Of a stretch of DNA of 64,000 nt, positions 21,209-56,608 are shown one piece after another. How positions within the stretch are numbered: position 1 is the stretch's first letter; each line of letters starts with the position of its first letter. Both the position numbers and the translations under genes were made by a program. Source of the stretch: Andalucia godoyi And28 (lineage: Eukaryota > Protista > Jakobida); NCBI GenBank assembly GCA_009859145.1, contig VRVR01000055.1:1-64000 (forward strand). The letters are read 5' to 3'. Under the pieces are notes generated by a model. It had not been told where the DNA came from, did not search any database, and was given only the letters and a program-made list of their open reading frames with translations.

Positions 21209-24200
21209 ATGCAGTTCATTGTCTTTCTCGTGCTTTCATTTCTGCTTCTAGTGTCCTCGATATGTTGCATTGTCCGTGGCGCTCCCACACAAATCCCATT
21301 TGATGGAAAAATCGGCTTTCTTCCTCAAAACGTTGCGCGGCGGCTCAAGCAACAACTGTTGCGGGGTGGCGTTGGAAACCATTCGCGTTCATCCCCTGAT
21401 TCCACACGATGGATGCTGCACGCAACTGTCAGAAACGGCAGTTGGTGGGCGGGGCTGGAACGACAATTCGATTCAGTGATTCTTGAATTGGTGGAAGACA
21501 GCATCTTTGGCTTTGCGACTGGATTGGTCAGTCAACTTCAACGATGGAAAGAGGATGGTGCAGCATTGGTTGCTGAAGGTAGTCAACCGCATGAACATCG
21601 TGCAGGAGTTTCTGGTAAGATTCTCCAGAAATCGAAAGGTGTTCGATTGCCATCTCGGACGTCAGTTGTGACACTGATAGGTGAAACACTTCCTGTTAAG
21701 AAGCTCGATCGACAAGTGCATTTTCTTCCCGCGAAATTCAAAAATGCTGCCAATCTACTGTCTATGAATAGAATGAATGTCGCGACGCATGCCGAAGCGA
21801 ATCGGACTTTCAGGTCTGTTTCGTATGCCCCCCGGATTGTGTTGTACTTGTTGATTTGTACATGAACACTAATGGGCCAAACTGGTCCCCGATCAACTGG
21901 GGACAGTCCTTGCCGCTGAATTTCTCGACTGCTTGCTGTTCTCCGCCGCTTGGTGGATATCAATGCGATTCGTTTGGAAGAATTTTGAAAATTGGTTTGC
22001 TTAGAAATCGCTTAAATGGTTCGATTCCAGAATCATTGGGTAATTTGTCAGATTTGGTGGACCTTCGCTTAAATTCCAACTCTCTCTCTGGGAGTATTCC
22101 TGATTCTGTGTGGAATTTGGAGCAATTGATCCACCTAGATCTGAGCGATAACGCACTGACCAGCGGAATTTCTGCAAATGCGGGGACGTTGGTGCACTTG
22201 CAGTACCTTGATTTGGACACGAATATGCTTACTGGATCGATTCCGTCGTCACTGAGCAATCTGATGCAGCTTCAGCACTTGGTGCTGTATTCCAACCTTC
22301 TTACTGGACCAATTCCAGAATCTCTTGGACAACTGACGCAGCTTCAATATTTGTATTTGGATTCCAATCAACTCTCCGGTTCAATTCCAGAGTCTCTGGG
22401 TGATTTGCTACTGCTTCAGGACCTGGATTTGGATTCCAATCAGCTGACAGGATCGATCCCTGAATCGCTTGGCAATCTATCTCAGCTTCAGTTTCTGATA
22501 CTGAGTTCCAACCAGTTGAATGGTTCGATTCCATTCTCGCTGGGGGACTTGTTTCAACTTCAAATGATGGATTTGGCTTTCAACAAACTAACTGGACCAA
22601 TTCCTGCTTCACTCGGTAATTTATTCTTGCTCGAGACGCTTTTCCTGAATGATAACGACCTATCGGATGAGTTGAACTGCATATCATTCGGTCAGAGGAT
22701 GAAGACGGTGAATTTGCAGGGAAATTCTCTCGTTGGTCCAATACCCTCGTGTTTTTGCGATCAAAATAGATTGACATTTGCATATTTAGGAAACAACTTA
22801 TTTACGTCATTTCCGAATTGTTCACTGTCAACTTTAATCCACTTAGATTTAGCCAATAATCGCCTTTCCTCGTTCCCTTTCGCCATCATTTCGAAGTTTT
22901 CATCTCTTTTATCCCTTGATGTAAGTTTCAACCATTTTTCTGGAAGATTTCCGTTAGATCTATTCGTAGCAAACTCTCCATTGCGATCTCTCTCGCTTGC
23001 TTACAATGATTTCAACGATGCATTCCCCTTGTATGTTTGTAATTATGCCATATCATTTGGAGAAGTCGTTGTGTCCGCAACAAATTTGGAGAGTTTAGAT
23101 ATTTCTGGCAACACAATCACGGGGGATTCGGGGAATAATTGACTACACTTTGTGTTCTTACTGCAACGAATCCAAAGTTTATTCGCTTACATCACTCAAA
23201 ATGAAGGACTCTGGTCTTCCGTCTCTGTTTCGATCATTTTCATTCGAACACGTTGGCGGTGCATGTTCTCTGCTACCGCTTTCATTCTTTCATATTCTTC
23301 CATTTCTCAATGGCCTTTCATCTTTAGATGTTTCTCCGAACGATCTTTCTATAGGTCTCGACGCAGTGCTGTCAATTCCATTACTTTCGTCGTTTGACAT
23401 TCGAAACAATTCTAACGCGCGGAAATCGACGCTCTCATTTGTCAATCAACAACTATTCTCATACGACCCTACAACCAACTATCCATTCAGCACAAGCATG
23501 TCATGTGTGCAGGCAAAGGTCGGTCGACTTGCATTCCAGGCGGATCCGGTGTTTTTTGACTATGAAAACTGTGTTTGTCGACCTGGATTCTATGGCAAGC
23601 CGCCAAATTGCACGCGATGTTTGTCCAATGCGGATTGTTCTTTCAGCAATGAAGCGGACATTCCGTATGGAAACATATCCATTGCTTTCCGAGAGATTGG
23701 GAATATCATTGCACAAAAGGGATACTACGCATCTCCTCCTGTGACGTACACAGAGATGATGGACAACCAATCCTATCCTACGTCCATGGAGATTTGTTCG
23801 TTGGCTGGAACCGATTTGACTCCCTGTGCTGCAACTCCAGCAGGTCCTTGCAAGACTGGGTATGAAGGAAGACTGTGTTCTGCCTGTTCGTCAGGGTATT
23901 TTCGCACTGGAGACCGATGCGCAGTATGCCCGAACTCGGTTGGCCTAACGTTTTTCGCCATGTTTGCAGTCCTCACAGTGATCGGATTAGTGGCGTGGTC
24001 CTTCTTGTCCGGCTCTTCTTCTTCCGGACTTGTCAAGATGGTGCTGTTCTTTTGGCAAGCGCTGTTCTTCATCCGCGCCCCAATGCCAAATGGAATGTAC
24101 CTCTTCACACACGGAGCGTCATCCATGACGACGATGACAATCGCTGGACCAGAATGCTTCTTCGATTCCTGGGATTACATGTCGAATTTCATCTTGTCGG

Positions 24201-25027
24201 TGATAGCTCCTGTGATTGCAGTCTGGCTTGTTGCGTTCATTTGGCTTGTTGGAGCGCTTCGTTTGCGGCGATCTTCTCTTTCGTCGAAAATCGCATGGTT
24301 CGACCGATGCCGCCGTTCTGCCATTTTCTTGTTCCTCTTTCTTTTCATGTCTGCTGTCTCCGCTATTCTTGCGTCATTGTCGTGCACCGCAGATGTCGGC
24401 GACGGCAAGTCGTACCTCATCTTCTATCCAAATGAGGGATGTTCGAAAGTTCTGCAAGGGAAATCTTCCGTCCTTCTTGTTGTGTACGTATTCGCAATTC
24501 CAGGTGGCCTGTCTTATCTTGTCTGGCGTAGTGGTGTCTTTTCCAAGAATGCAAAATCGGATACACGCAGCATGTACGTCTACTCGTTGCTTTTTGGTTC
24601 GTACCGACATGATAGACGATGGTGGGAGTTTGTTGTAGTCCTGCGTCGAGTGCTGTTTGTGGCTGCATATGTTACAATCTCTCCTCTCTCTGAGTACCGC
24701 ACTATGTTGGTTGCATCTGTTTTAGTTGCAGCTGTGGGTGCTCAAGCCATCGCTACGCCGTACCATCGTTCTGCCGAGAATTCTTTCGAAATCATCTCAC
24801 TTGGAATCTTGCTTGTCAATCTCGTATGTTCCGTGCAATCGCAAGTTCTTGCCGTACAGGACATTGATGAAGCGGGTACGCTCGTGTTTCTCATGAACGT
24901 CGGGTTTTCAATTGTTGTTATTGCGATGTTGGCCGTGCACTTTCAACAACGATTGCTGAAGAAGAAAAGATTGAATGGAGATGCGTCGCTTACCGAAAGC
25001 TTTCTCGAGCAGAATGGAACACTATAG
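21209..25027 (+). CDS. LRR receptor-like protein with Cys-rich segment and multi-TM domain (~1,250 aa; putative intron 21716-21771; frameshift at 23130-23133)
   Basis: Signal peptide MQFIVFLVLSFLLL at ATG 21209. A GT..AG 56-nt phase-0 intron would join it in frame to the LRR N-cap (VDLYMNTNGPNW). Plant-RLK-type LRRs (L..L.L..N.L.G.IP.SLG.L). Removing one G from the gggg run fuses ORFs 21856-23142 and 23150-25027. The exon-1 join is inferred. Confidence 0.8.
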
Positions 25028-34151: not shown

Positions 34152-37100
34152 TTAACTTTTGGTTACACTACCGAAAGCTGTCTTGATAATCACCAGGGTA
34201 TCGCGGTAGAAATTCCGAATTTCGATGACAGTCGGGTCCGTTGCCCCCAGCTGTATCGTGGCCTGGTTTAACAACGTAAGCAGCTCACCAGCTCCTTCAT
34301 GTGGGCGTATCTCCACGAGCTGTCGAATCGCGTTGAATCTTCTTCTAAAAACTCGAAGTTCAGTTGAGTTTGCATCCACAGACGCCAGTCTCTTTTGAAT
34401 TGGAACATAGGAATCTGTATCTTCCCTCTGTAATTTCAAAATACGAGGTGGCGAGGATAGCTGACGACAAAGATCGTAAATTCCATCACTTTGCGTGATT
34501 GTGCCTAATATCTTGAGATCATTGGACAATTCTGTGCACTCTTTCACAGCGTCTGAAAGCCAACCAAGTTTGATCAAACATCCGATCAAAAAAGCACGGC
34601 ATTGGAGGAACTCACTTTTCGATGCATCAGGGCTATCGTGCAGACACAATGACCTACGGATTCCACATACGGACATTGCTTCATGATAATTTCCCTTTTC
34701 TACGAGAACTTGACCAACTCTCCGTCGGTGTGACAATACCACAGAATCATCTACGTCGGACCGACTCTTTTCGAAGTCAAGTATAGAATTGAATTCTCGT
34801 AAGCCACTCTCGAAGGCATTCAACCGGATGAGGCAAAAACAATAATAGAGTCGAGGAGTCACAATTTCCACTTTAGTAAATCCCGATTGGAACTTCTTAT
34901 GTACTTCAGTCAATGACTGGAACACAATGACGGCATCTTCATATTTTCCAAGTTCATACAGCCAAGTCGCCATATTATGGCGAATCCATAGCATGGAACG
35001 ACTCTCCTCTCCCGCAATACGTCCGTAATCTAGTAAGAGTCTCTCATACATTTGGACACATTTAAGAAGTTTGGCGGTGTCTTTGAGCTTGAAGAAACAG
35101 CGTGCCTGTCCGTTGAGAGCAATTAATTTGCCTTCGACATCATTTCTGGCTGTTGCAATCACCATCGCAATTTGATACTGTTCAAGAGCTGCGTCAACGT
35201 AATCGTTGTCGAACAGTTCGGAAGCAAACCAGTGAGAGAGAGACAGTGTAACATGAGAAGTTGCACCAAAAACAGACGACCACTCTCGTGACATCTTACG
35301 TAGCGATTCAAATGCTCTTTCTCGTTCATTTCCCAGTGCTATACTTAGTAGCAAGCGTTCAGTTTGAATAAGCAAATGAAACGCATGATCATCTGAAGGC
35401 CACAGTTTTTCAACATCCGTAACGAGAGCGGTACACCATTTGTCAGCCTCCTTCATTCTATCGTTGTGCACTAGCGAACGAAACATTCGATACCTGAGCA
35501 AAAGTATATAACCAACCACGGTGTCACTCAGTGTTGATAACGTCGAAATCGAAGGCAACACACTCTCGAACAAGCCGTGGAGCAAGTTCAATCTCTCACA
35601 TCGCTTTAATCCATTCGAAATCCGCAAACACAATTGCCAAAATTCCGAAGAGGCCTCTCCCCAACAAGCTGCAGCAATCGCAAGTGACGCTTCACGGAAG
35701 ACTTCTGAACCGCCATAATCCGTTCCATCGTAGATGTGAACTTGCGAAACACCGACGCTTGCTTTGCGAAGATCAGAAACGATATCCAAAATCCACGGTC
35801 GGATATCGGGATCGTTATTGAACATCTTCACCAACAGAGGGTACAAAACGTCCCGTACAAAAGAAGAGAAGACTGGAGGCACACCAGAGTTGCATACCGA
35901 GTCCAGCCAGTCCTTGTCTTGAAGATCCAAGTTACTGTAGACTTCCCTGACTGCCGGAATATTGTTCGGATGAAAAAGAATGCTCATCAAAATGCCAATC
36001 GAAAAAACATCTGATGCTGGCAGCAAATTCCTCACGTCATGCGAAGTTCCATGCACAATTTGCTCGGGACTTCGAAAACCCGGCGTGCCTCCAAATACGG
36101 ATCGATGACTCCGTGAGGTGTTTCCAGACACGGAAACTTGAGATCCAATCCCAAGCTCGTCTTCTTGAAATTTGTATGACATTCCAAAATCTATGAGTGC
36201 AACTACATACGATTTAACCAGTGCTGAACCACTGGTAACATCCGGAAATGAAGGCGCTACCGGGCGACCATCCGCGTCCAGATGACACTCTCGCAAAACC
36301 AAAATATTCGACGGCTTCAAATCTAAATGCAAACACTTCATCTTATGCATATGGTGAATTGCAAAGAGGATTTGCAGCATTATATGTCGACATACTAAGA
36401 GCATTACTTGCGGTTCCCGTTCCCATCTTGATTTCCAATCGGAAGACTCGAGCAAATCATGAAGCGATCCCAAGGAAGAGTACTGTGAGAAAACCGCCCC
36501 ATCTCTGGCAAACAATACGGGTGCAATGTTTGCATGGCCGTCAAGTTCTGCCCAAATGTCTCTCTCTCGCGTGCGTGCATTCACATGAGACGACAATTTG
36601 CAAGCAAAAAACTTCGTAGTAATTTCGGTTGACAAATTTGTCGAATCAATACGAACAAACTCGACCATGTATACTGCACCATATCCACCGACTCCGATCA
36701 GAGCGTGCACTTTGAGAAGCTTGCATTTCGGGTCGTCATGTGCAACCATGCTGTCGCACAGAGAGCGCATTTTTTCATGAGAATAAAGCAGCGGAGGTCT
36801 TCTTCGACAGGAAATCTTCAGAAATCGGTGGGAGTATGCGTGATGCAGCAATAACGCGGTAAAGCAAGCGCCAAGATCTGAAGCATATACACATATCCCA
36901 TCTCCACCGTCTGCTACCGTGGACAACATAAGGCAGTGAACACGTGCGGACTCTTCCATCTCATACGGCGAGTGATGATTCGAGGCTTCAGCATTGCTCC
37001 CGAGATTGGCTCTTGTAATGTGAAAAGGAACTTCTGGTGAATCTTCTCTCATTTCAAACTCACCATTCACGACGAGAGGGACACTGACGTCTTCAACTCC

Positions 37101-37679
37101 TTCATGTCGGTCACGGCACAATTGATTGTACAAGAGAAACCTAATCTTTCCCAATGGATGCATTGCACTCGACGCATCCAATTGCAATTGATCAGTGGAC
37201 ACCGCACTGCTTGTCACGAAGAGTAGCACCGGGTTGTGTATGCTCACCTTGCGTCCAGCAGACAACTGTGCTGTCACAGCTACTGGCAAGTCGGAAAAAT
37301 CATCTGGCGCCAAGAAAACAGTCCTCCAACTAATGCCCCTTCCCCACATCACTTCCGATGCCCAGTTACGTGCCTCACGTTGCAGTATTTCTTCTGAAGG
37401 CGAAGTATACACAATCCACATGCGGACAAGCAGGTTTGCAGTTTGCAGGAATTGGGGGCCTCCACTCCTCTTGGAATAAGAAAGGGAAGCATAGCTGAAA
37501 GGATCGGTGATGTAGAGCGCACATATCACAGGATATACGTCCGTAAATCCTTCGGTACCCCAATCGGAAGGACACGCAACCTGACGGAGACCATGAGAAC
37601 CGCCAACTTCAAGCGAATTATCGCTTCCGGCAGCGGACACAGTTGCTCCCCACGACTCTCCAGATTCAGAGAGAGCCAT
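34152..37679 (-). CDS. Ser/Thr protein kinase with unknown N-terminal domain and C-terminal TPR-like repeats (1175 aa)
   Basis: IGVGGYGAV, FACK, HLDLKPSN, DFG, GTPGFRSPE and SDVFSIG. Later helical repeats such as RHNMATWLYELGKYEDAVIVF resemble kinesin-light-chain-type TPRs. Confidence 0.88.
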   Translation of the reverse strand: MALSESGESWGATVSAAGSDNSLEVGGSHGLRQVACPSDWGTEGFTDVYPVICALYITDPFSYASLSYSKRSGGPQFLQTANLLVRMWIVYTSPSEEILQREARNWASEVMWGRGISWRTVFLAPDDFSDLPVAVTAQLSAGRKVSIHNPVLLFVTSSAVSTDQLQLDASSAMHPLGKIRFLLYNQLCRDRHEGVEDVSVPLVVNGEFEMREDSPEVPFHITRANLGSNAEASNHHSPYEMEESARVHCLMLSTVADGGDGICVYASDLGACFTALLLHHAYSHRFLKISCRRRPPLLYSHEKMRSLCDSMVAHDDPKCKLLKVHALIGVGGYGAVYMVEFVRIDSTNLSTEITTKFFACKLSSHVNARTRERDIWAELDGHANIAPVLFARDGAVFSQYSSLGSLHDLLESSDWKSRWEREPQVMLLVCRHIMLQILFAIHHMHKMKCLHLDLKPSNILVLRECHLDADGRPVAPSFPDVTSGSALVKSYVVALIDFGMSYKFQEDELGIGSQVSVSGNTSRSHRSVFGGTPGFRSPEQIVHGTSHDVRNLLPASDVFSIGILMSILFHPNNIPAVREVYSNLDLQDKDWLDSVCNSGVPPVFSSFVRDVLYPLLVKMFNNDPDIRPWILDIVSDLRKASVGVSQVHIYDGTDYGGSEVFREASLAIAAACWGEASSEFWQLCLRISNGLKRCERLNLLHGLFESVLPSISTLSTLSDTVVGYILLLRYRMFRSLVHNDRMKEADKWCTALVTDVEKLWPSDDHAFHLLIQTERLLLSIALGNERERAFESLRKMSREWSSVFGATSHVTLSLSHWFASELFDNDYVDAALEQYQIAMVIATARNDVEGKLIALNGQARCFFKLKDTAKLLKCVQMYERLLLDYGRIAGEESRSMLWIRHNMATWLYELGKYEDAVIVFQSLTEVHKKFQSGFTKVEIVTPRLYYCFCLIRLNAFESGLREFNSILDFEKSRSDVDDSVVLSHRRRVGQVLVEKGNYHEAMSVCGIRRSLCLHDSPDASKSEFLQCRAFLIGCLIKLGWLSDAVKECTELSNDLKILGTITQSDGIYDLCRQLSSPPRILKLQREDTDSYVPIQKRLASVDANSTELRVFRRRFNAIRQLVEIRPHEGAGELLTLLNQATIQLGATDPTVIEIRNFYRDTLVIIKTAFGSVTKS

Positions 37680-38257: not shown

Positions 38258-41200
38258 ATGAACGGCTCTGGTAGGCAGGCCACGAACTCCCGTGTTGACT
38301 TCCGAGTGCTAAAGTTTCCCCCTGTCGCTGTTCGCGTTTGCGGTACTTCTATTTCCGAGGGCGATGGGCTCGTTGGTCCGTTGCGGTCGCTGTCAGTCGA
38401 TAGTTCTTCCACTTCGGAAACGTGTCGTCAATCAGTTCGAAAAGACGATGCACATCCAGATGTGGATTCCGATTGGATGTTAGTCGATGTGACAGATGAT
38501 GAGTGGAAACTGCAATGGAAATCCAATTTTGTCGAAGGAGGTCGATCGCTTTCCAGGTTTGCCCAGAAAATTGCGAAGAAGCTCACAGAGGATGAAGAGC
38601 TGTTTTGCGTAACTGTTGTGGGTTCTCCTCAAATGAACACATTTGTCTGTGACAAGGCCCGCTCTTTGGATAGGGCTCAGACATGTATCCAAGAATCCTT
38701 GGAAGCTGTTCTGACAGTCGTTTTGTTGATTGCTGATCCAAACGATCGTGTGTCTGATTTGATACTTGACGAGACATATGCCGATGTTTCGAAGCACGTT
38801 CCTTCTTCGGTACCTGGTAATCCTGCAGATTACCGTGCTGGATGGTCATCGTACATCCATAACCACTCGATTGTAATTGACACTCCGTCCGGGAAGTCAA
38901 TGTCAGCGACCGACAACCGCCCCGTCCTTGTTTCCGCAAGTATTTTGGACGTTCAATGTTTGAGTGACACTGCCGGATCATCTGCGAGATGTTCTTGGGA
39001 ATGGGAAAATGTTGGTGAATCTCGTGTGGATTCTTTATCATTCTCGCGTTCTACCTCCACAGACAGTGATGTCATTGATGAACTGTTTGCAACTGTTCAT
39101 TGTGGGTTGCCAGGATTGTTCGGAACTCATTCGGAACGATTTCCTACGGGATTGTCATTCTTTTTTGGAGGATCTTGTGACACTTCAAGCGACCAGCAGA
39201 AAGCGATGGGTCTGCGTTTCAGTGGCGATGGTTGTTCGTTTGAGGTGGGATCTTTTATGATCATAACCTCTTCATCTTTGAATCGTGTTGTGAATCTGCA
39301 CAATGGTTTTTCCGTGACTGTTGACTGGAATCATCCACCAGGCTCGAAAGGCACGTTTCTGTCATCGACGGAAGCAACAGTGCAAAACTTGCTGCAGACA
39401 TTACCGGTTGTTGAAGAAATTCGAAAGCACTCTTCAAAATTCACCCCTGTCTCTGGATTGAACATTAAGATGAGCGGTTATCAGGTTTTCGCTTCTGGAC
39501 TTGTACAGCTACGATTCAGATTTGGTGATGCACTGCTGCTCATTTTGTCGGTAGGACAAGCTGACACCGTGGTTCGATCCGTCATGCTTGAACTTCGACA
39601 AAAGATGCAGTCGTCGGATAAAGCCGGCAGTTACCGCACCGTGCATGTCCTGGGCTGTCGTTCAATTCAATGGTCTTCGCAGCATGGTTTATTCATTCTT
39701 CCTCCGAAGAGCAATGGCCTGGAACATTCCACGGTTTCTTTCTCGTGTTCTTCTGTTCCACTCCAGAATCCATTCTTCCCGACAGATTCTTATGGCAGAC
39801 TGTGTGTGGGTGCACACACCGAACCCGGTGACAATTTATCCGCTGTATTGGATGGCTTCTGTGATTTTGCAAATGATGACAGCGGAGGTTTGGTTTCCTT
39901 TATCTCCCCCAATGGTGACCAGCTGATGAGCTACAAGGGCAAATTACAGAATGGAAAAGTGCTAGACCATTCACAGGTGCTATGTACGAATTATCAAAAT
40001 GGTCGACTGTTTTCTGGCGTCTTTGTCAACGAGGTTCCACACGGGATAGTGGAAATGCGAGACTTGACGAATCTTTCGTCTGATGGCTTGCGATTCGAGA
40101 ATGGCAGAGATTGCGGTTCTGTGCCTCTTAGAGACCAGTTTCACAGTTTCCTGGAGAACATTAAGCAAAAGTTTAGTACCGACCCGCACATCCATCATTT
40201 GGACAAGCCGTCTTTTGTTCTTCGCAATGGCGAAGCATTCTGCGTCTTTTCGCACGAGTGTCGTGTTTCTTCAACTGCTTCAAATATTTTCCGTGGTTGG
40301 ACGCTTTCAGATGGAGTCGTTGCTGTCAAAATTTTTTCTGAAGCGCAGGGTCATAAGGATGCGACTGTGAATGGGCGCCTCCCCATCAGTTCAGACCCTG
40401 ATAGTGGTATCGTTCGGTACATCCACACAGATTGCGTGCGGTCCTCTGAATGTTCTTTGCGTTCATCGGACGGGAAGCCTGCCTCTGCACTTGTTCTTGA
40501 ATTGTGTGAGCCAGGTGATGCCGAGACTCACATTGTAGCATTGCAGAACGAGATTTCTTCCGAAAAGTTCTTGTCGCATATTTTCGGACTTCTTCGAGGG
40601 TTGCATGGCATCCACAACTTGAGTATCGTCCACCGAGACATCAAGCCGTCTAATGTTTTGTTTTCATCAGGACCTCTTGCTCGTCTTCGACTAGCCGATT
40701 TTGGTATTTCTGCCTTTTTACCGAGTGGCAAGACAAGCAGGCTGCAAACAGCCCTCGATGGTGTCGGTACTGCTGGATGGTGTGCTCCTGAACAAGTATC
40801 CGATACGCTGCTCCACACAACACGGACGGATGTATTCAGTTTTGGATGGACAATGCTCTTTCTGTGCATTGATCATGAACGTTGTTCAAAGTATCCCCGT
40901 CTCTGCAAGAACAGTTCTTTTTTGGCTCTGTCTCCATCCGATCGAATGGAGTTATTCCGAACTTCGCAGGGTCTTGAGGCATACCGAAAGGCTTTATCCG
41001 ACGATATTGAAGGAATCAAGGCTGGTCGGATACCTCTTCACATGGAGTCTGCACATGCTCAAAGCACCATGCAATACTTCTTCGCAGATCTCTTCAGTAG
41101 AATGGTGGATGTTGATCCCAAGAAACGGGATACTTCAGCGTCATTGTTGCGACATCCTCTGTTCTGGTCTTGTACTGAAAGTTTGAATTTGGTGAAAGAT

Positions 41201-41692
41201 GTTGTTGACGTCGTGCATGATTTGGCAATTACCCAACCACGCGCTCCCACGGGTTCAGAAGTCTTGGATGTGCTTTTGCAAAGGAGTTCCGCCGGCAAGA
41301 ATTCCATTCTATCCTCTTCCTCCTTTGATGCCTGGGGTCCAAATTCCAATATGCTTATTCGTGGACAGTTGATAGATTCTGTTTTTGATGTTAGAGCCAA
41401 GAAGTTGCCGTCCACAGCCAACCTGACGATGTATGCGGTCATGAAATTCTACAGAAACATTCTCACCCATTCAGATGCTTCGTCGGCGCTCTTCCTCCTC
41501 GGAACAAACAATGACTCTTTTCTGACGTACCGTTTGCTGTCTGCCGCGAAGAATGGATTGTTGTTTCATGACATTTGGAAGATATGTTTAGAAGCTTTCC
41601 GCAGAACATCGAAAAAGGATCGTACATCTCTGTCCAGAGAAGATGTTAACTCTCTGTGTATCTTAGAAAAATGCTTTGGAACACTAATGTAG
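38258..41692 (+). CDS. Kinase-KEN ribonuclease, RNase L/IRE1-like (1144 aa)
   Basis: Kinase ~40260-41170 (VAVK, HRDIKPSN, DFG, GTAGWCAPE) is followed directly by LLRHPLFWS and a KEN-like region with KFYRNILTH (RNxxxH, 41444-41470). MORN-like Y.G...NG repeats precede the kinase. No signal peptide, TM helix or ankyrin repeats seen. Confidence 0.82.
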   Translation: MNGSGRQATNSRVDFRVLKFPPVAVRVCGTSISEGDGLVGPLRSLSVDSSSTSETCRQSVRKDDAHPDVDSDWMLVDVTDDEWKLQWKSNFVEGGRSLSRFAQKIAKKLTEDEELFCVTVVGSPQMNTFVCDKARSLDRAQTCIQESLEAVLTVVLLIADPNDRVSDLILDETYADVSKHVPSSVPGNPADYRAGWSSYIHNHSIVIDTPSGKSMSATDNRPVLVSASILDVQCLSDTAGSSARCSWEWENVGESRVDSLSFSRSTSTDSDVIDELFATVHCGLPGLFGTHSERFPTGLSFFFGGSCDTSSDQQKAMGLRFSGDGCSFEVGSFMIITSSSLNRVVNLHNGFSVTVDWNHPPGSKGTFLSSTEATVQNLLQTLPVVEEIRKHSSKFTPVSGLNIKMSGYQVFASGLVQLRFRFGDALLLILSVGQADTVVRSVMLELRQKMQSSDKAGSYRTVHVLGCRSIQWSSQHGLFILPPKSNGLEHSTVSFSCSSVPLQNPFFPTDSYGRLCVGAHTEPGDNLSAVLDGFCDFANDDSGGLVSFISPNGDQLMSYKGKLQNGKVLDHSQVLCTNYQNGRLFSGVFVNEVPHGIVEMRDLTNLSSDGLRFENGRDCGSVPLRDQFHSFLENIKQKFSTDPHIHHLDKPSFVLRNGEAFCVFSHECRVSSTASNIFRGWTLSDGVVAVKIFSEAQGHKDATVNGRLPISSDPDSGIVRYIHTDCVRSSECSLRSSDGKPASALVLELCEPGDAETHIVALQNEISSEKFLSHIFGLLRGLHGIHNLSIVHRDIKPSNVLFSSGPLARLRLADFGISAFLPSGKTSRLQTALDGVGTAGWCAPEQVSDTLLHTTRTDVFSFGWTMLFLCIDHERCSKYPRLCKNSSFLALSPSDRMELFRTSQGLEAYRKALSDDIEGIKAGRIPLHMESAHAQSTMQYFFADLFSRMVDVDPKKRDTSASLLRHPLFWSCTESLNLVKDVVDVVHDLAITQPRAPTGSEVLDVLLQRSSAGKNSILSSSSFDAWGPNSNMLIRGQLIDSVFDVRAKKLPSTANLTMYAVMKFYRNILTHSDASSALFLLGTNNDSFLTYRLLSAAKNGLLFHDIWKICLEAFRRTSKKDRTSLSREDVNSLCILEKCFGTLM

Positions 41693-43467: not shown

Positions 43468-45531
43468 TCAAACCGGGTTGTTTTGATCACCAGCAGTTTC
43501 AAAGAACTCTCGCACGCGTCTAACCAGCCGATCACTCGCGCTGCTCCGGTTCTCCAGCTCAAACAGACTGGGGAACTCGTGATGCAGTCGTTGCAAAAAG
43601 GAACGCAGAGGTCGCCGCTCCTCCGTGTCCAGCGCAGGAATCGGAAGAGAAGGATTCAGCACATCGTTCAAAATGCCTGATCGAATTTCAAACAGTTCAT
43701 CTTTGTTGTGCAGCCGAGTATGTGATTCTAGAGTTGATTCCTTCAAATAGATGGCCACCGGCGGCAGCCACGAGAGAATATCACCGATTGCCAGGTACAC
43801 CGTCGTGAGCACAGCTTGCTGCAGACACACTTGGAGCCGTTGTCCATCGGACAGAACTACCAACGACGCCACTGCATCCAGCCAATCGGGAGAGAAGGCC
43901 GCGTGGTAGTGAAACTCTTTTTTGTCACGCTTCTGGATAAAGGACGCACCGCCCCAGTCAATCAAGCATATGGGAAACTGAAAGTCGCTTTGCATCTCCT
44001 CTAACAGCACCACATTTTGCGGACAAATGTCCATGTGGTAGATGCCACGGTCATCGCACTGCAAGACAATGCTCATCAATTGTTGAAGAAGTTCCGTGCA
44101 AAAAGCGAGGGAGCGGTTCGGATAGCACGATGCAAGCGGCAACGGCACTCCTACAGGCGCAGTGCACAGAATAGCTCCTTGATCGGACTGTTCAGAATGC
44201 AAGAGAGTGGGGACCCAGAAGCGATGACGGCCCCAGTCGATTCTGGAAAGCTCCTGCAGTGCCCCAAGTTCGGTTGTCCACTCCGCGAGCCTCGATACCG
44301 GAAAACACTTCGCAACAATAGAGTTCGTCGCATCAAGAGTCCCAGTTGCTAGTTCCACAGCATTCATCTTCCCGATGCCATGGACCGGGGCACGCTGCAG
44401 CATTCCAGTCAGCTCCAGTCTCGGTGAAACAGAGAGTGAGCGCACGATTCCAGAGGACAAGGCAGAAATAACTGGAGGCGGCGTGCCATTCCACCCACAC
44501 AAGGCATGTGGATCGCTGGACAACAAGAAGCAAAGCCCCTTCATACCGTCCTCGTGAAGTGCAATGGGTTCAGTTTCCAGCAGTTCATAGTCCCATCCAA
44601 ACTCGGAATCGAAAATGCGCAAGCACAGAAACACAATAAATTTCCGGTTGCACGCAAAGCCCCAACACACACGTCGAGAAATACCGGATTCCTGAACAAT
44701 GTGCGCAAACCGCTGATACACTTGCTGGGTAGCCTCGGAGAGCTTTGACTTTTTGGTACCGTCGAGTCGATCGGATCCTTTGAGTTCCCCGGCAATGCTT
44801 GCTCCCGAGTACATGGGACACCGAAGAGCGAGACGACCGATGCAAAGCAGCAAATCCACCCTTTGGTTCTGTCCGTAGAGGCCACTCCGCGAGAAATCCA
44901 CGAGATGCATGTCGCCGTGCTTGGAGAGGAATCGTGTGATGAACAACCGGAACTGGACTTGCAGGAGCGGCTCAGGACAAGAGTCCAAAGGAAGCGTTCC
45001 CACCGTCTCGTTCCACATTGCCTGGAAATCCTCCCAGAACGGGAGATTGGAAGAAATGGAGGGGAAAAGATCGTCAAACGAAGATCTCGTGGCATACAAA
45101 TTGGTGGTGCCGCTGCGCGACGACGACCCCAACGCCAGCAAATCCTGCGACAGCTTGGAGAGGAAATACTTGATATCGGATACCTTCGCCACCTCTTCGG
45201 CAGCAAGTCTTCCTTGATGCTCCGCCTCTTTCTCTTGTCTCTCACGATCAAGGGCTATTTGTGTCGACTCTTTCTCCTGTCTTTCTCTCTCTTTCTCAAG
45301 GCGTTCATGTTCAGCGGCTGCTTCAACAATTTCCTTCGCTTTCCTTTCATGTTCAGCGACTGCTTCAGCAATTTCCTTCGCCTTCCTTTCATGTTCAGCG
45401 GATGCTTCAGCAATTTCCTTCGCCTTCAAAGCGTGTTCAGCGACTGCTTCAGCAGCCTCCTTTGCCTGCTTCAACTGCTCGAATTGCTTCAGCAGCTCCT
45501 GAATCTTGTCATTTGGATCGGACGAACTCAT
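43468..45531 (-). CDS. Crinkler-like effector copy 1: coiled coil + PD-(D/E)XK endonuclease fold + atypical (FunK1-like) kinase
   Basis: RVDLLLC...IAGELKG (D...ExK), then IVAKCFP, YHMDICPQNVVLL and CLIDWGGA; intact 687-aa ORF. Confidence 0.8.
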   Translation of the reverse strand: MSSSDPNDKIQELLKQFEQLKQAKEAAEAVAEHALKAKEIAEASAEHERKAKEIAEAVAEHERKAKEIVEAAAEHERLEKERERQEKESTQIALDRERQEKEAEHQGRLAAEEVAKVSDIKYFLSKLSQDLLALGSSSRSGTTNLYATRSSFDDLFPSISSNLPFWEDFQAMWNETVGTLPLDSCPEPLLQVQFRLFITRFLSKHGDMHLVDFSRSGLYGQNQRVDLLLCIGRLALRCPMYSGASIAGELKGSDRLDGTKKSKLSEATQQVYQRFAHIVQESGISRRVCWGFACNRKFIVFLCLRIFDSEFGWDYELLETEPIALHEDGMKGLCFLLSSDPHALCGWNGTPPPVISALSSGIVRSLSVSPRLELTGMLQRAPVHGIGKMNAVELATGTLDATNSIVAKCFPVSRLAEWTTELGALQELSRIDWGRHRFWVPTLLHSEQSDQGAILCTAPVGVPLPLASCYPNRSLAFCTELLQQLMSIVLQCDDRGIYHMDICPQNVVLLEEMQSDFQFPICLIDWGGASFIQKRDKKEFHYHAAFSPDWLDAVASLVVLSDGQRLQVCLQQAVLTTVYLAIGDILSWLPPVAIYLKESTLESHTRLHNKDELFEIRSGILNDVLNPSLPIPALDTEERRPLRSFLQRLHHEFPSLFELENRSSASDRLVRRVREFFETAGDQNNPV
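45304..45471 (-). repeat. 42-bp coding tandem repeat (4 units) in the coiled coil
   Basis: (t/g)(t/c)(c/g)atgttcagc-type anchors at 45304, 45346, 45388 and 45430; encodes AEA(V/S/A)AEHERKAKEI units. Confidence 0.85.
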
Positions 45532-45752: not shown

Positions 45753-45909
45753 TCCAGTACTCATGGGAAAATCACGAGTTCGGGGATTTTCGATCTTACC
45801 AGATTTTTCTCCGAATTCCCTCCTTTCCCGTCTGAATTCTCTTTTTCCCGTTTCTTCTTCTTTCTTCTTTTTCTTATTCCAATTCCTTCTTTCATTCATC
45901 ACCCCAGCC

Positions 45910-47811
45910 ATGAGTTCGTCCGGTTCAGATGATGTGGTTCAGAAGCTGCTCAGGCAAATCGAGCAGTTAAATCGTGAAAATGAGAGAGAGCGGCAAGAAA
46001 AGGAAATCGCGCAGGCTGCCGTTGAACACGAGCGCCTGGAAAAAGAGAAGGAACGACAAGAGAAAGAAGCGGAACATCAAAAAAGACTTGTTGCCGAAGA
46101 ACATGCGAAGAAATCAGATGTGCAACTCTTTCTCTCCAAATTGTCGCAGGATTTACTGGCTATTGCGTCATCGTCGCGCAGCTACACCACAAACTTGTCT
46201 GCCACAGACGCCTCGTTTGAAGATTTGTTTCCGTCTCTCAACGACTGTCCGAACTGGAACGATTTTCAGGCGCTTTGGCAAGCAACAGTGGAGAAGCTGC
46301 CTTCCGAGTCATGTCCCGAGCCACTGTTGCAGGAGCAATTCCGTGTGCTCATTACGCGATTCCTTTCGCAGCACGGCGACATGCACCTGGTGGATTTCTC
46401 GCGCAGTGGATTGTATGGATTGAACCAAAAGGTGGACTTGCTATTCTGCCGGGGCCGACAAGCCCAGCGCCTGCCCACGTACTTTGAATCGTGCCTCGTC
46501 GGCGAACTCAAAGCGTCCGGCCAGGTCGAGGATGCCGACGATTCGAAACTTTCCGACGCCGTCCTGCAGGTGTACCAACGATTCGCACACATTGTTCAAG
46601 AATCGGGTGTTCGTCGGCGCGAATGCTGGGGGTTTGCGTGCAACCGCACGACAATCGTGTTTCTGTCGTTGCGCATTTCTGATTTAGAGTCTGAGTGGGA
46701 CTACCAGTTGCTACAGACCCCGCCGATGGCGCTTAAAGATGACGGGTTGAAGGGACTATGCTTCTTGTTGTCCAGTGAATCGCATGCCTTGTGTGCGTGG
46801 AATGGCGCAGCGCCACCTGTTGTGTCCACCTTGTCTTCTGAAATTGTGAGTTCACTGTCCGTTTCACCGAGACTGGAATTGACCGGGATGCTGCAGCGTG
46901 CACCCGTTCATGGCATCGGCCAGATGGATGCCGTGGAACTGGCAACTGCGACTCTTGATGCGACGACCTCTGCTGTTGTCAAGTGCTTTCCGGCATCGAA
47001 GAAAGCAGAATGGACGACCGAACGTGGAGCACTGCAGGAACTCTCGAAAATTGACTGGAGTGATCACCGTTTCTGGGTGCCCACTCTTTTGCGTTCCGAA
47101 CAGTCTGAGCGTGGCGCCATTCTGTGCACAGCTCCAGTAGGAGTGCCGTTGCCGCTTGCGTCGTGTTATCTGGGCCGTGCTCTCATTTTCTGTTCAGAAC
47201 TTCTGCAGCAATTGATGAGCATTGTATTGCAATGTCATGACCATGGCGTGCATCACATGGACATCTGTCCGCAGAATGTAGTGTTGCTGGAGGAGGTGCA
47301 AACTTCCTTTCTGTTTCCAGTATGTCTGATTGACTGGGGTGGCGCATCGTTTATGCAAAAGCGTGACAAAAAAGATTTTCACTACCATGCCGCTTTCTCG
47401 CCGGATTGGTTGGACCCCATGCGTTCGCTGGCGAATCTGACGGATGGACAACGGCTCCAAGTGTGTTTGCAGCAGACTGTGCTCACAGTGTTGTACCTGG
47501 CAATTGGTGACGTCCTCTCGTGGCTGCCGCCGGTGGCCATTTTCCTGGATGAATCAACCCATCGAGAAAAGCATACTCGGATGCACAACAAATCCGCCTT
47601 GTTTCGAATCCGAGCGCGTATTCTGAACGATGTGCTGAACCCATCCCTTTCGATCCCTGCGCTGGACACGGATGATCGACGGCCTGTGCGTTCCTTTTTG
47701 CAAAGACTGCACCATGAGTTCCCGAGTCTATTTGAGTTGAAGAAACGAAGCAGCGCGAATGCTTTGCTCGTTGGACGCATTCCAGAGATTTGTGCGACGT
47801 TTCGAGGATGA
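45910..47811 (+). CDS. Crinkler-like effector copy 2 (coiled coil + REase fold + atypical kinase)
   Basis: Start MSSSGSDD at 45910 matches paralog starts; KVDLLFC...LVGELKA, HHMDICPQN and DWGGA; intact. Confidence 0.8.
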   Translation: MSSSGSDDVVQKLLRQIEQLNRENERERQEKEIAQAAVEHERLEKEKERQEKEAEHQKRLVAEEHAKKSDVQLFLSKLSQDLLAIASSSRSYTTNLSATDASFEDLFPSLNDCPNWNDFQALWQATVEKLPSESCPEPLLQEQFRVLITRFLSQHGDMHLVDFSRSGLYGLNQKVDLLFCRGRQAQRLPTYFESCLVGELKASGQVEDADDSKLSDAVLQVYQRFAHIVQESGVRRRECWGFACNRTTIVFLSLRISDLESEWDYQLLQTPPMALKDDGLKGLCFLLSSESHALCAWNGAAPPVVSTLSSEIVSSLSVSPRLELTGMLQRAPVHGIGQMDAVELATATLDATTSAVVKCFPASKKAEWTTERGALQELSKIDWSDHRFWVPTLLRSEQSERGAILCTAPVGVPLPLASCYLGRALIFCSELLQQLMSIVLQCHDHGVHHMDICPQNVVLLEEVQTSFLFPVCLIDWGGASFMQKRDKKDFHYHAAFSPDWLDPMRSLANLTDGQRLQVCLQQTVLTVLYLAIGDVLSWLPPVAIFLDESTHREKHTRMHNKSALFRIRARILNDVLNPSLSIPALDTDDRRPVRSFLQRLHHEFPSLFELKKRSSANALLVGRIPEICATFRG

Positions 47812-50013: not shown

Positions 50014-52050
50014 TTAGGTCTGTCCAAAACGACACTTGGAGACTGCGACGTAGCCAAGTATCCGGTAGAACACCAACATCCCGAGAAGGACCATGCAGTC
50101 CCCGGTGATCGACATGACAGAGTATCCCAGCGTATCGAGTGCTTGCTGCCCGGTCGCGATGCATGGGCCGTCCGAACAAGTGAAGGTGGTTCCCTGGAAT
50201 TCGTTGAGCGACAGGGCTTCTTGGGCGTACAAGAAGAAGGAAGTGTACTTGAACGGATAGAACCACCAGCCAATCTGGTCGGACTGCGTCACAAAACCAC
50301 CCACGGAAAGGAAGATTGTGATCACGATACTGGCAAGCACATTTCCGACGTCCACGGTCTTGGAGATCGCGGCAAGTGTCAGCGAAAGCGCCGAGTTCAC
50401 CTGTTCAAACAGCAGCAAAATGCCAAAATACAAGAAAAACTTGCCAGCGTCATGGGAGTCGTATCCAATCATAAAGTAGGAAATGACCGAGTACAGAAAA
50501 ACGTAGAATGCTTCAAACGGAAGCGTCGCTCCCACATATGCAGCATAGTAAGAGAGCGAAGAGTACATCGAGTCCTCGCGCTCCTTCCAGAACACGGCAC
50601 GCTCTGCAGGAAACGATGCAATGATGGAGAGCGACGGAACAAAAGCAAATGTACACAGCGACATGAAAAACGAAGCCACTCGCTTGTATATGGAAGCTTG
50701 GTTGTCTCCAATCTGCAGATACAGCAATCCGACGAACACAGACATGAACAAGTATGCCACAACTTGCGTAGAAAGCAGGATCGGGTCGCGCGTATAGTTT
50801 CGCAGCGTTCGTTTGAACAGGACTGCGAACTGAACCGGTAGCGGGGCAGTGCTGCTTCGAGGTTGCTCCTGGAGAGTGGCTGGGACGCCAGACGGTGCTG
50901 CAGACGTGGGAGATGCAGGGCTGGCCATCGGCTGTGCTCCCATGCACTTCTTGAGAGACATGGAGAAGATCGAATTACCGGACTGCTTCAGCCCGTTTCC
51001 GTGCTCGACCATGAACCCCGTAGGATTCTCCAACGCTGCATCAATGACGCCTTGGCTTTCCCGAGGTGCGGCATTCCAGAATTCCTGCATGATGGCAACG
51101 TACTTTGCATCTGCCACAGACTGCCGCTGTAGCGCCTCTTCGTCCATTTTTGTCTCTTTAGCTGTTAGGCTACCGTCGCCATTCTCATGCACATGCCAAT
51201 GTTCGTGCTCGTGCTCGTGCTCATGCAAAGAATACACACTCATTGGAGACGTGATGCTGAGCATGTAGTCCGCAGGATTTGTCAGCGGCGGGACAGGACG
51301 CCCAATGCTTTCAAAGTGCGGGATCGCTCCATCCACAGTTCCATAGTACGCCATCTGACCCTTCGCCATCAGGATGATCTTGTCGAAAAGCTTCAGAAGC
51401 TCAAACGAAGGCTGATGAACAGTGCAGATACAAGTGCATCCCTTCGTGTCCGCAAGCGTCCGCAACAGCTGGATGACCTTGAGTGCCGAAAACGAATCGA
51501 GACCCGATGTGATTTCGTCCAGCAACAGCACATCAGCGCCTTTAATGAGTGCGATTCCGATACTCAGTCTGCGTCTCTGGCCGCCCGAGAGCCCCCGGAT
51601 CATCGGCCCACCGGCCTTCACCTCTGCACACGAAGAGAGCCCCAGGTCTCTCAGCACCGACGACACGCGCTCCGAGATCTCCGGCTCCTTGAAATTCGAC
51701 AGCTTTGCTGCGTATTCCAGCGTCTCGCGTGTCGACGCAGTTGCCAAAAGCACGTCTTGCTGCTGGATGTACCCGACTCGGGAAGACGGAACCAGGTACT
51801 TTACTTGGCCTGTAACCTGGCCGGTTCGCAGTCTACCTGACAGCGAATCCAGCAATGTGGACTTTCCGGCGCCAGACGAACCCAGGATGCATGCTACTTC
51901 CCCTTTGCACAAAGCCCCGGACACATTCTGCAGAATTCGAGTTTCCTTCACTTGGAACGATACGTTGTTCCACACCAGAACCGGCTGGCGCGCTGCAGCT
52001 AGCTCTGTGCGAGAAGCCACATCCACCCCGGATTCAGAAACCACAGACAT
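50014..52050 (-). CDS. ABCG (White-family) half transporter
   Basis: N-terminal NBD (GSSGAGKST, LSGGQRRR, LLLDEITSGLD) followed by a C-terminal TMD; HEHEHEHEH insert in the linker. Confidence 0.95.
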   Translation of the reverse strand: MSVVSESGVDVASRTELAAARQPVLVWNNVSFQVKETRILQNVSGALCKGEVACILGSSGAGKSTLLDSLSGRLRTGQVTGQVKYLVPSSRVGYIQQQDVLLATASTRETLEYAAKLSNFKEPEISERVSSVLRDLGLSSCAEVKAGGPMIRGLSGGQRRRLSIGIALIKGADVLLLDEITSGLDSFSALKVIQLLRTLADTKGCTCICTVHQPSFELLKLFDKIILMAKGQMAYYGTVDGAIPHFESIGRPVPPLTNPADYMLSITSPMSVYSLHEHEHEHEHWHVHENGDGSLTAKETKMDEEALQRQSVADAKYVAIMQEFWNAAPRESQGVIDAALENPTGFMVEHGNGLKQSGNSIFSMSLKKCMGAQPMASPASPTSAAPSGVPATLQEQPRSSTAPLPVQFAVLFKRTLRNYTRDPILLSTQVVAYLFMSVFVGLLYLQIGDNQASIYKRVASFFMSLCTFAFVPSLSIIASFPAERAVFWKEREDSMYSSLSYYAAYVGATLPFEAFYVFLYSVISYFMIGYDSHDAGKFFLYFGILLLFEQVNSALSLTLAAISKTVDVGNVLASIVITIFLSVGGFVTQSDQIGWWFYPFKYTSFFLYAQEALSLNEFQGTTFTCSDGPCIATGQQALDTLGYSVMSITGDCMVLLGMLVFYRILGYVAVSKCRFGQT

Positions 52051-54718: not shown

Positions 54719-56608
54719 ATGAGTTCGTCCGATTCAGATGACAAGATTCAGGAGCTGCTGAAGCAATTCGAGCAGTTGAAGCAGGCAAAGGAGGCTGCTG
54801 AAGCAGCGTTTGAACGTGAAAGACAGGAGAAGGAAAAGGAACGCCAGGAGAAAGAAGAGGCACAATCCGCTCTTAGACGAGGAAGACGACGGAATGAGAT
54901 TTTGGAACAGGAACTGCAGAAATCAAGAATCGAAACGTTCCTTACCGGACTCTCACGGGATTTATTGGCCGTTGGGTCGTCGTCGCGCAGTCGTGGAACG
55001 AAATTGTATACTTCGAACGTCTCTCTCCAGCATCTCTTTGCTGACTTTCCTCCTCCTCTGCATTGGGATGACTTCCAAGCTATGTGGAACGAAACGATTG
55101 GCAGTTTACCTCTGGACTGTACGGAGCCACCACTTCAAGAGCAGTTCCGACTGTTTGTCACCCGATTCCTTTCCACCCACGGCGACGTGCACATGGTGGA
55201 CTTCTCCAGAAGTGGCCTGTATGGACTGATTCAGAAAGTGGATTTGCTCTTCTGCCGCGGCCGCACTGCCAAGCGTCTGCCCACATATTTTGAATCCTGT
55301 CTTGTTGGAGAACTCAAAGCATCAGATTCCGCTGAGCATCCGGATGCAAAGTTGAAAGAGGCTGTTTTACAAGTGTATCAGCGCTTCGCGCACATGGTGG
55401 AGGAGTGCGGGATACGCCGACGTTCGTACTGGGGGTTCGCTTGCAACCGAACGTCGATCGTGTTCTTGCATCTGCGCATTCTGCAGACTCGCAAGGGGTG
55501 GGACTATGATCTGTTACGGACAAAACCAGTCGCTCTGGATACGGAAGCCTTGCATGCCTTGTGTGCCTTGTTGTCGTGTGACTCTCATGCGTTGTGCGCA
55601 TGGGACGGCGCATCGCCACCTGTCATTTCCCCAGTATCTTCTGGCATTGTTTCTTCCTTGCGGATTGCAGGACAAGTGCATTTGACAGGAATGCTGCAAC
55701 GCGGACCAGCACACGGAGTTGGAGAGCCAGATGCAGTCGAGGTTGCGACTGGAATGGTAGACGGATCGACGTCCGTAGTTGTGAAGTGCTTTCCGAGATC
55801 AAGACTCGCCGAAATGGAGACCGAACGAAGTGTGCTGCTCGAGATTTGCGGAATCGACTGGGGTAGTCACAAGCACTGGGTACCGTCTCTTCTCCTTTCT
55901 GATCAGTCTGATCGTGGGGGTATTTTGTGCACCACTCCTGTTGGAAATCCGTTACCACTTGCCTCGTGCTTTCCCGAGCATATGGTTCTTCTGTATTGCA
56001 CCGAACTTCTTTTTCAACTGACATCCATCGTGTTGAAATGCCATCGGAAATGCGTTTACCACATGGACATTTGTCCTCAAAATATTGTGCTTCTGAGCGA
56101 ACCCGTGGTCCAATTTCAGTTTCCCGTTTGTTTGATCGATTGGGGAGGCGCCTCTTTCTTGCAGAAACGAAACGACGAGTTTCATTACCACACTGCATTT
56201 TCTCCGGACTGGCTGCACGAAGTGCGTTCACTGGCAGATCTGTCCAATGGCGAGCGACTGCAGGTCTGCTTGCAGCAAGTCGTCCTGACCTCCATGTATC
56301 TCGTGTTTGGCGACATTCTCTCGTGGCTACCGCCGGTGGCCATTGTCCTCTCCGAGAACCAGCAACAGGATTCACACGTTCGCGTACGAACGAAAATGGA
56401 TTTATTTCGGATTCGAGGAGAACTTATCGGCAATTTGCTCGATGCGTCGCTTCAAGCACCAGTGTTGGCAGACCGTGGGCCTCTACGTTTGTTTTTCCAG
56501 CAATTGAAGGCCGCGGTTCCGAAGCTTTTTGATTTAGGAGAGCGAAACAGCGCGGATGACGCGCTCATTACTCGTATGCAAGAATTTTGCCTTTCTATCC
56601 GTGAGTGA
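54719..56608 (+). CDS. Crinkler-like effector copy 3 (coiled coil + REase fold + atypical kinase)
   Basis: KVDLLFC...LVGELKA, YHMDICPQN and DWGGA; intact 629-aa ORF. Confidence 0.8.
   Translation: MSSSDSDDKIQELLKQFEQLKQAKEAAEAAFERERQEKEKERQEKEEAQSALRRGRRRNEILEQELQKSRIETFLTGLSRDLLAVGSSSRSRGTKLYTSNVSLQHLFADFPPPLHWDDFQAMWNETIGSLPLDCTEPPLQEQFRLFVTRFLSTHGDVHMVDFSRSGLYGLIQKVDLLFCRGRTAKRLPTYFESCLVGELKASDSAEHPDAKLKEAVLQVYQRFAHMVEECGIRRRSYWGFACNRTSIVFLHLRILQTRKGWDYDLLRTKPVALDTEALHALCALLSCDSHALCAWDGASPPVISPVSSGIVSSLRIAGQVHLTGMLQRGPAHGVGEPDAVEVATGMVDGSTSVVVKCFPRSRLAEMETERSVLLEICGIDWGSHKHWVPSLLLSDQSDRGGILCTTPVGNPLPLASCFPEHMVLLYCTELLFQLTSIVLKCHRKCVYHMDICPQNIVLLSEPVVQFQFPVCLIDWGGASFLQKRNDEFHYHTAFSPDWLHEVRSLADLSNGERLQVCLQQVVLTSMYLVFGDILSWLPPVAIVLSENQQQDSHVRVRTKMDLFRIRGELIGNLLDASLQAPVLADRGPLRLFFQQLKAAVPKLFDLGERNSADDALITRMQEFCLSIRE

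Follow-up and report, generated by a model that had tools for sequence, protein, structure and literature searches.

A putative soluble kinase-KEN protein of IRE1 descent, with a new N-terminal module, from the jakobid Andalucia godoyi

The kinase-KEN cassette drives both the IRE1 unfolded-protein response (UPR) and the 2-5A/RNase L antiviral response, an N-terminal sensor gating the ribonuclease (RNase) by dimerisation. A long open reading frame (ORF) in the jakobid Andalucia godoyi And28 raises the question of whether such a cassette is present in this protist and, if so, to which N-terminal region it is joined. The ORF lies on the forward strand at 38258-41692 of the window, that is, of the whole stretch of 64,000 nucleotides analysed here (assembly GCA_009859145.1, contig VRVR01000055.1, positions 1 to 64,000). 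In a preliminary description, made from the DNA letters and their translations, its product was regarded as an RNase L/IRE1-like kinase-KEN protein with a new N-terminal architecture. The present analysis inclines somewhat towards a soluble IRE1-derived kinase-KEN protein carrying a new N-terminal module. From the N-terminus, the 1144-residue protein is composed of about 650 residues of distinctive sequence, a protein kinase domain with affinity to IRE1, a conserved HPLFW junction and a C-terminal domain with a conserved RNxxxH motif.

In an exhaustive search with HMMER, 1.84 billion cluster representatives yielded 105,381 matches at the level of the kinase, among which only three proteins, P0007 (970 amino acids, aa), P0008 (909 aa) and P0009 (688 aa), are true relatives beyond the kinase core, with identities of 27-30%. 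All three are A. godoyi proteins of EukProt (ANDGO_07774, ANDGO_07190 and ANDGO_06880) and are annotated as the kinases 'nek3', 'cst-1' and 'NTF6', respectively. A fourth high scorer, P0006, proved to be a tandem-repeat artefact of kinase fragments and was not retained as a relative. The four proteins thus appear to constitute a lineage-specific paralog family, so far seen only in the jakobid A. godoyi, of which the protein encoded in the window is the most degenerate member. Its N-terminal region, devoid of a transmembrane segment, is shared by P0007 and P0008. As modelled, P0008 stops just after the kinase, without junction or KEN domain, and P0009 begins exactly at the conserved 'MCLGSH' of the module preceding the kinase; in either case the short form may result from a truncated gene model. 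No family member and no N-terminal homolog came back when the full protein, the family alignment or the N-terminal alignment served as query in word-indexed protein searches; the three paralogs are contained in the collection of 15 billion proteins, yet were not returned even when they were themselves members of the query, and the negatives of this search for the family are therefore weak. Exact-product look-ups for the protein and for P0008 gave no match, and no paper tying jakobids or A. godoyi to IRE1 was found in the literature.

The kinase domain was recognised by Pfam Pkinase (PF00069) with 90.6 bits against a cut-off of 31.7, and the β3 Lys (K691), H792-R-D794, N799, D814-F-G and A843-P-E are all retained. 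The motifs VSSTASNIFRG (670-680), VAVK (688-691), HRD (792-794), DFG (814-816), APE (843-845), HPLFW (966-970) and RNILTH (1066-1071) were all located in the protein, and the reality of the ORF, the intact HRD and DFG and the degenerate glycine (Gly) loop of the preliminary description were borne out. When the protein alone was compared with the PDB, IRE1 ranked best at 63 bits, followed among other kinases by OSR1 at 55 bits, and a second stretch of the IRE1 alignment (residues 932-985) takes in RHPLFW. The family profile widened this separation: IRE1 accounted for all of the 16 top-ranking distinct PDB sequences (80-91 bits), and other kinases began at 66 bits. RNase L was absent from the best 60 PDB matches of this profile; the family is therefore not an RNase L orthologue, and the likeness to RNase L previously read into the kinase gives way to a resemblance to IRE1. 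Even when the junction was left out, KEN-bearing kinases (plant IRE1s, Salpingoeca IRE, Exaiptasia ankyrin-kinase-KEN and Styela proteins) held 11 of the top 16 places outside the family in the ranking for the kinase core, at a small margin of 72 versus about 67 bits; the higher whole-protein scores of P0010-P0013 stem from the multiple kinase domains of these oomycete proteins. The activation segment DFGISAFLPSGKTSRLQTALDGVGTAGWCAPE and the segment 'SDPDSGIVRY' are IRE1-like as well. A neighbour-joining tree of the kinase cores, for which 23 domains passed the length filter, was uninformative and placed the family on a long, unresolved branch.

Differences from IRE1 are concentrated in the nucleotide-handling elements. 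The paralogs keep an IRE1-like Gly loop (IGSGAEAIVYRG...VAVKIF), and the protein of the window has instead S-S-T-A-S-N for G-S-G-A-E-A; at the column of the IRE1 αC Glu it carries Thr, with Glu in P0008 and P0009. The MAFFT alignment also places an insert of 35-40 residues, relative to IRE1, in its kinase C-lobe. These alignments point to an IRE1-derived kinase domain whose nucleotide-handling elements are degenerate in this paralog. By analogy with RNase L, its main role is probably that of a scaffold or of a switch gated by nucleotides, not that of a robust phosphotransferase.

The nature of the C-terminal domain is the central issue, and the RNase residues by which a KEN domain may be judged are, in yeast Ire1, Y1043, R1056, N1057 and H1061. 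The PDB alignment with IRE1 runs on through RHPLFW into the first KEN helix. A hidden Markov model (HMM) of 17 Pfam-type KEN domains matches the protein at residues 955-988, and P0007 and P0009 at the equivalent place, with domain E-values of 8e-6 to 7e-5. Profile-profile comparison (hhalign) of the family C-terminus with 18 KEN domains gave a probability of 96% and an E-value of 6e-9, values driven by the junction; the extended path of this alignment sets the family motif F-x-R-N-x3-H on the I-R-N-K-x2-H of KEN. Upon removal of the first 25 residues, which comprise the junction, the path was unchanged, with a score of 23.8 and a single-comparison E-value of 0.004. None of 200 column shuffles reached this score (12.5 +/- 2.5, maximum 22.1), and the reversed alignment scored 11.6. 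The same register was recovered with the protein, P0007 and P0009 taken singly (scores of 18-20 versus 12.4 +/- 2.3, attained by 0-1 of 100 shuffles), and an unguided MAFFT alignment of the family with 12 IRE1-type proteins aligned the RNxxxH columns alike. Among the three members having the domain, which is 26-29% identical between paralogs, R1066, N1067 and H1071 belong to 36 invariant columns. The spacing R1066-x4-H1071 corresponds to the HEPN signature Rx4-6H, which in that superfamily is borne by a helix of an all-α domain (PMC3710099), and a helical context is suggested by DSSP on a low-confidence model. Rx4H is the catalytic signature of HEPN/KEN domains, in which the Arg, the next polar residue and the His are needed for the activity of RNase L and IRE1 (PMC3710099). 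A Tyr is found 19 residues before the Arg in the paralogs as against 13 in IRE1, and the IRE1 catalytic Tyr cannot be placed confidently in the family; in the protein of the window the stretch between KEN helix 1 and the RN helix is shortened.

Taken on these alignments, descent of the C-terminal domain from KEN is considered probable, and the domain is most likely a strongly diverged KEN that has kept R-N-x3-H, with residues 990-1144 expected to adopt the all-helical KEN fold. RNase activity is plausible for the family and uncertain for the protein itself, the prospect as a whole falling a little short of even.

The N-terminal portion is of a different character. Residues 1-649 match nothing in Pfam, NCBIfam, PADLOC, the PDB, 5.8 billion proteins or viral and metagenome contigs, in agreement with the earlier remark on about 560 unknown residues. 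Within them, residues 1-240 have no match in Pfam, NCBIfam or the PDB, and residues 241-515 have no homolog outside the four-member family in the search of 5.8 billion proteins and metagenome contigs. The best PDB matches of the N-terminus were flavivirus E proteins at E-values of 0.3-1, which were treated as noise. The best-conserved N-terminal stretch is the module directly upstream of the kinase (residues 516-642), with 23 invariant columns in the four-member alignment. MORN repeats (PF02493) comprise several 23-residue units of the form YxGxWxxGxxxGxG, and two loosely MORN-like units, YKGKLQNGK and FSGVFVNEVPHGI, are discernible by eye in this module; β-hairpins at 574-622 and a helix at 625-640 are predicted in a low-confidence model with predicted local distance difference test (pLDDT) values of 50-59. 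No Pfam MORN match was obtained for residues 541-681 or 1-640 at E<=10, nor for the paralogs, and no MORN protein appeared in the PDB profile search with the N-terminal alignment; the MORN-like repeats proposed earlier are therefore reduced to a Gly-rich pattern seen by eye and the low-confidence hairpins. An AlphaFold2 model of residues 1-649 from the four-sequence alignment reached a pLDDT of 33.

The protein lacks a signal-peptide-like or hydrophobic N-terminus. No transmembrane segment was evident in a hydropathy scan, which is not a dedicated predictor: the highest 19-residue Kyte-Doolittle mean was 1.57, in a segment containing D and R, versus 2.1-3.1 for canonical IRE1s in the same analysis. 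A degenerate IRE1 luminal domain was considered and rejected, since hhalign of the family N-terminus against seven IRE1 luminal regions gave an E-value of 0.41 and a probability of 0.1%. Ankyrin repeats were not found by Pfam in the full protein at E<=1 or in residues 1-640 at E<=10, and Pkinase is the only Pfam domain in the protein. The absence of signal peptide, luminal domain, transmembrane segment and ankyrins is thus upheld, and the lack of signal peptide and membrane segment supports the view that the protein is cytosolic and soluble.

Several results weigh against a functional kinase-KEN protein. The Pfam model Ribonuc_2-5A (PF06479), the check put forward in the preliminary description, misses the full protein, residues 966-1144 alone and the paralog C-termini even at E<=10; comparison of the C-terminus with the PDB by phmmer and by a three-sequence profile (hmmsearch) returned nothing at E<=10, and the C-terminus alone had no NCBIfam or PADLOC match. 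The KEN domain of the preliminary description is consequently a claim of two halves, in which the junction and helix 1 match, the profile-profile alignment of modest statistics and the invariant RNxxxH speak for it and the Pfam and PDB searches do not; the IRE1 type of the kinase is upheld. The HH-suite probability of the junction-free alignment is just 8%. In the reverse search, the junction-free family HMM gave at most 2 bits against 163 proteins; the RNxxxH helix of a KEN domain was the site of three of its five best matches, and scores were higher for proteins with a KEN (Mann-Whitney p 0.013), an outcome that is no more than suggestive. The protein has no Tyr at either candidate KEN catalytic column (the gapped alignment has a gap or K1047 there, and the ungapped alignment has T1052) and no Asp at the column of KEN 'DLLR', and it is without the GxGxxG glycines and the αC Glu by which a competent kinase is recognised. 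The AlphaFold2 model of residues 640-1144 from the four-member alignment had a pLDDT of 34 and was unusable, and Foldseek of this model against the PDB gave template-modelling scores of at most 0.12 and nothing at E <= 0.001, which is noise. IRE1 sequences had deliberately been kept out of both AlphaFold2 alignments because a circular prediction of KEN was to be avoided, the price being too little depth. As the KEN Tyr, the Gly-loop glycines and the αC Glu are missing, either enzymatic activity could be impaired, and the protein may be catalytically dead in one or both domains. The RNase and the sensor domain named in the preliminary description are regarded as putative.

The failure of the Pfam and PDB sequence methods, the missing Tyr and Asp and the low junction-free probability would all suit a divergent cytosolic Ser/Thr kinase or pseudokinase from an IRE1-like ancestor, with a C-terminus that is a non-catalytic KEN relic or is not KEN past helix 1; such a protein would signal or scaffold without cleaving RNA. 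The retention of HRD, Asn, DFG, the β3 Lys and an IRE1-like activation loop with the invariant T826 agrees with such a protein, as does P0008, which as modelled ends after the kinase, so that the family may tolerate loss of the KEN domain. This explanation is nevertheless held to be rather unlikely: R, N and H of Rx4H are invariant in a domain otherwise so divergent between the paralogs, two independent aligners put them in register with the KEN active site, the hhalign scores exceed their shuffle controls, and the degenerate Gly loop and the loss of the αC Glu argue against a purely kinase function. The same degeneracy (SSTASN for GSGAEA, Thr for the αC Glu), together with the lack of a Tyr near the RN helix and the shortened stretch before it, could mark the protein as a decaying paralog, recently pseudogenising, in a family whose working members are P0007 and P0009. 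An intact ORF of 3.4 kb free of stops, the preservation of all catalytic-loop residues, the IRE1-like activation loop, the junction and RNxxxH, a G+C content at third codon positions (GC3) similar to that of neighbouring genes and the invariant columns of the pre-kinase module make this improbable. Lastly, an IRE1-type kinase followed by a conserved junction would be expected of a canonical IRE1 of the endoplasmic reticulum membrane, whose signal peptide, luminal domain or transmembrane segment had been missed through a wrong start or an overlooked intron. Such an error is very improbable, given about 650 residues of continuous ORF before the kinase with no segment of transmembrane-grade hydrophobicity, an in-frame stop 6 codons upstream of the ATG and only 579 bp between the ORF start and a divergently transcribed neighbour; the N-terminus is, moreover, unrelated to IRE1 luminal domains, and the same membrane-free region recurs in P0007 and P0008.

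The soluble kinase-KEN reading can be placed among known systems. With IRE1 (Ire1p/ERN1) the protein shares the nearest kinase domain by sequence, including the activation loop G-T-x-G-W-x-A-P-E and the 'SDxxxxxVRY' segment, the RHPLFW junction with the first KEN helix, and R-N-x3-H in register with the RNase active site. Unlike IRE1, it is without signal peptide, luminal sensor and the single membrane segment that connects sensor and kinase, and has unrelated N-terminal residues in their place; its KEN is too diverged for PF06479 and has no Tyr at the catalytic column, and the Gly loop, the αC position and the C-lobe insert set its kinase apart. RNase L is comparable in its soluble sensor-(pseudo)kinase-KEN layout, in degenerate nucleotide-binding elements and presumably in activation by dimerisation in the cytosol, but the present protein has none of the ankyrin repeats by which RNase L binds 2-5A, and its kinase keeps HRD and DFG. 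On these sequence comparisons the family would have branched off independently from the IRE1-type module as a cytosolic form. Plant IRE1C-type proteins are IRE1-derived kinase-RNases without the luminal sensing domain that still have a canonical KEN and are held in the membrane by a transmembrane anchor; both features are missing from the jakobid protein, whose N-terminal region is large and new.

The joining of the cassette to N-terminal modules that differ between lineages is also seen in Exaiptasia ankyrin-kinase-KEN x2 (P0020) and in a metagenomic LRR-kinase-kinase-KEN protein (P0018; leucine-rich repeats, LRR). The latter, of 1044 aa, comprises LRR, two kinase domains and Ribonuc_2-5A and is encoded on a 246 kb ENA metagenome contig. 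Kinase-KEN fusions, including those with ankyrin and CCCH, are listed in a survey of HEPN domains (PMC3710099). These fusions have recognisable repeats (ankyrin, LRR, CCCH) and a KEN detectable by Pfam, in contrast to the homolog-less N-terminus and cryptic KEN described here. Kinase-KEN cassettes with alternative N-termini are thus already known; the new elements are the homolog-less N-terminal module, a KEN missed by the standard model, the lack of any membrane anchor and the finding of such a protein in a jakobid.

IRE1 and RNase L offer a model from which the mechanism of the protein may be inferred. Its N-terminal module would take the place of the luminal and transmembrane portion of IRE1, or of the ankyrins of RNase L, and would drive or gate self-association, the trigger being a ligand in the cytosol, a partner protein or a membrane surface. 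Such self-association would bring the kinase domains back-to-back and thereby juxtapose two KEN domains, the kinase of this paralog acting as a scaffold or nucleotide switch. The paired KEN domains would then complete a metal-independent endoribonuclease site, and RNA would be cut to leave 2',3'-cyclic phosphate ends. For HEPN/KEN proteins, expansion within a lineage is a typical mark of conflict and stress systems (PMC3710099), and defence or stress-induced RNA decay is therefore, by analogy, the most likely biology of the family. A wider proposal, which is tentative and at present somewhat doubtful, is that jakobids evolved their own cytosolic 'RNase L-like' system, in which soluble IRE1-derived kinase-KEN endoribonucleases would detect, through the new N-terminal domain, a signal in the cytosol (a nucleotide messenger, a product of viruses or transposons, or a cue from membranes or lipids) and dimerisation would switch on RNA cleavage.

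If this were true, the family would represent a third, independent sensor solution for the kinase-KEN switch, located in Discoba, a supergroup best studied in the trypanosomatids, which are not known to have a conventional IRE1 pathway, and the cassette would emerge as a general, re-usable "sensor-gated RNase switch" far beyond animals. It would also furnish a new candidate sensor domain from a deep-branching free-living protist and open the question of RNA-decay signalling in Discoba, a group in which the trypanosomatids have been reported to be without a conventional UPR (PMC2809764). Because the standard Pfam model fails to recognise this KEN domain and the paralogs go under the names nek3, cst-1 and NTF6, surveys of IRE1/RNase L-like proteins in protists are probably incomplete.

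Table 1. Features of the ORF and its product, with coordinates in the window
Feature	Position	Strand	Basis
Complete ORF, 1144 aa plus stop codon	38258..41692	+	Single uninterrupted frame
N-terminal region, aa 1-240; Ser-rich leader, then possible small α/β unit	38258..38977	+	Aligns with paralog P0008 only
Family-specific region, aa 241-515; predicted β-rich	38978..39802	+	Common to A. godoyi paralogs P0007 and P0008
Conserved pre-kinase module, aa 516-642; CxGxH, G-rich β-hairpin 'MORN-like' stretch, then helix	39803..40183	+	Present in all four members
IRE1-type protein kinase domain, aa 660-965	40235..41152	+	Pfam Pkinase; best PDB matches IRE1
Degenerate glycine loop VSSTASNIFRG, aa 670-680 (paralogs: IGSGAEAIVYRG)	40265..40297	+	Motif, alignment
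Catalytic-loop HRD, aa 792-794 (HRDIKPSN)	40631..40639	+	Invariant in family
DFG-APE activation segment, aa 814-845, IRE1-like (DFGIS...SGKTS...GTAGWCAPE)	40697..40792	+	T826 family-invariant
HPLFW junction plus putative diverged KEN-like (HEPN) domain, aa 966-1144	41153..41689	+	KEN HMM match 955-988, hhalign, MAFFT
R1066-N1067-I-L-T-H1071, putative RNase active-site motif (Rx4H of KEN/HEPN)	41453..41470	+	Alignment to KEN IRNKxxH

The features of the ORF are collected in Table 1. The nuclear genome of A. godoyi is about 20 Mb in size, compact and mostly without introns (PMC7050145), a description that fits the window. The latter is eukaryotic and intron-poor and encodes ABCG half-transporters, an RCC1/ephrin-receptor-like protein of 2364 aa and a DDE_3 transposase, besides several kinase-like genes. 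A giant-virus or bacterial origin of the window was rejected in view of the eukaryotic ABCG, RCC1 and ephrin-receptor-like genes and of the relatives from A. godoyi. Scans for tRNA genes and Rfam families found none in the window. The head-to-head neighbour at 34152-37679 (-) encodes 1175 aa, with about 320 N-terminal residues of unknown kind, a kinase with long inserts and C-terminal TPR repeats. Paralogy of the protein with neighbouring kinase genes, including this one, was rejected, as the similarity is of the generic kinase-core type only (E 2e-6).

Downstream, three paralogous genes at 43468-45531 (-), 45763-47811 (+) and 54719-56608 (+) encode proteins of 629-687 aa that are 55-68% identical, each with a weak Pkinase match confined to the C-lobe (E 1e-3 to 4e-6); they form a local cluster of very divergent kinase-like proteins, and at least the product of 43468-45531 (-) has an N-terminus of Ala/Glu/Lys-rich repeats (AEAVAEHERKAKEI...). 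Towards the start of the window, the 2364-aa ORF at 10394-17488 (+) combines an RCC1-like propeller with many ephrin-receptor-like Cys-rich repeats and NCD3G; it is overlapped from upstream by a 544-aa ORF with the same domain types at 8914-10548 (+), and both probably belong to a single giant gene that an intron or a frameshift divides. The genes at 6514-8352 (+) and 23150-25027 (+) are a paralog pair of 58% identity, whose sole match is a weak one to DUF7630 in 23150-25027. Two ABCG-type half transporters, 30% identical to each other and with a DDE_3 transposase ORF between them, complete the picture at 50014-52050 (-), 56879-58108 (-) and 59203-61227 (+).

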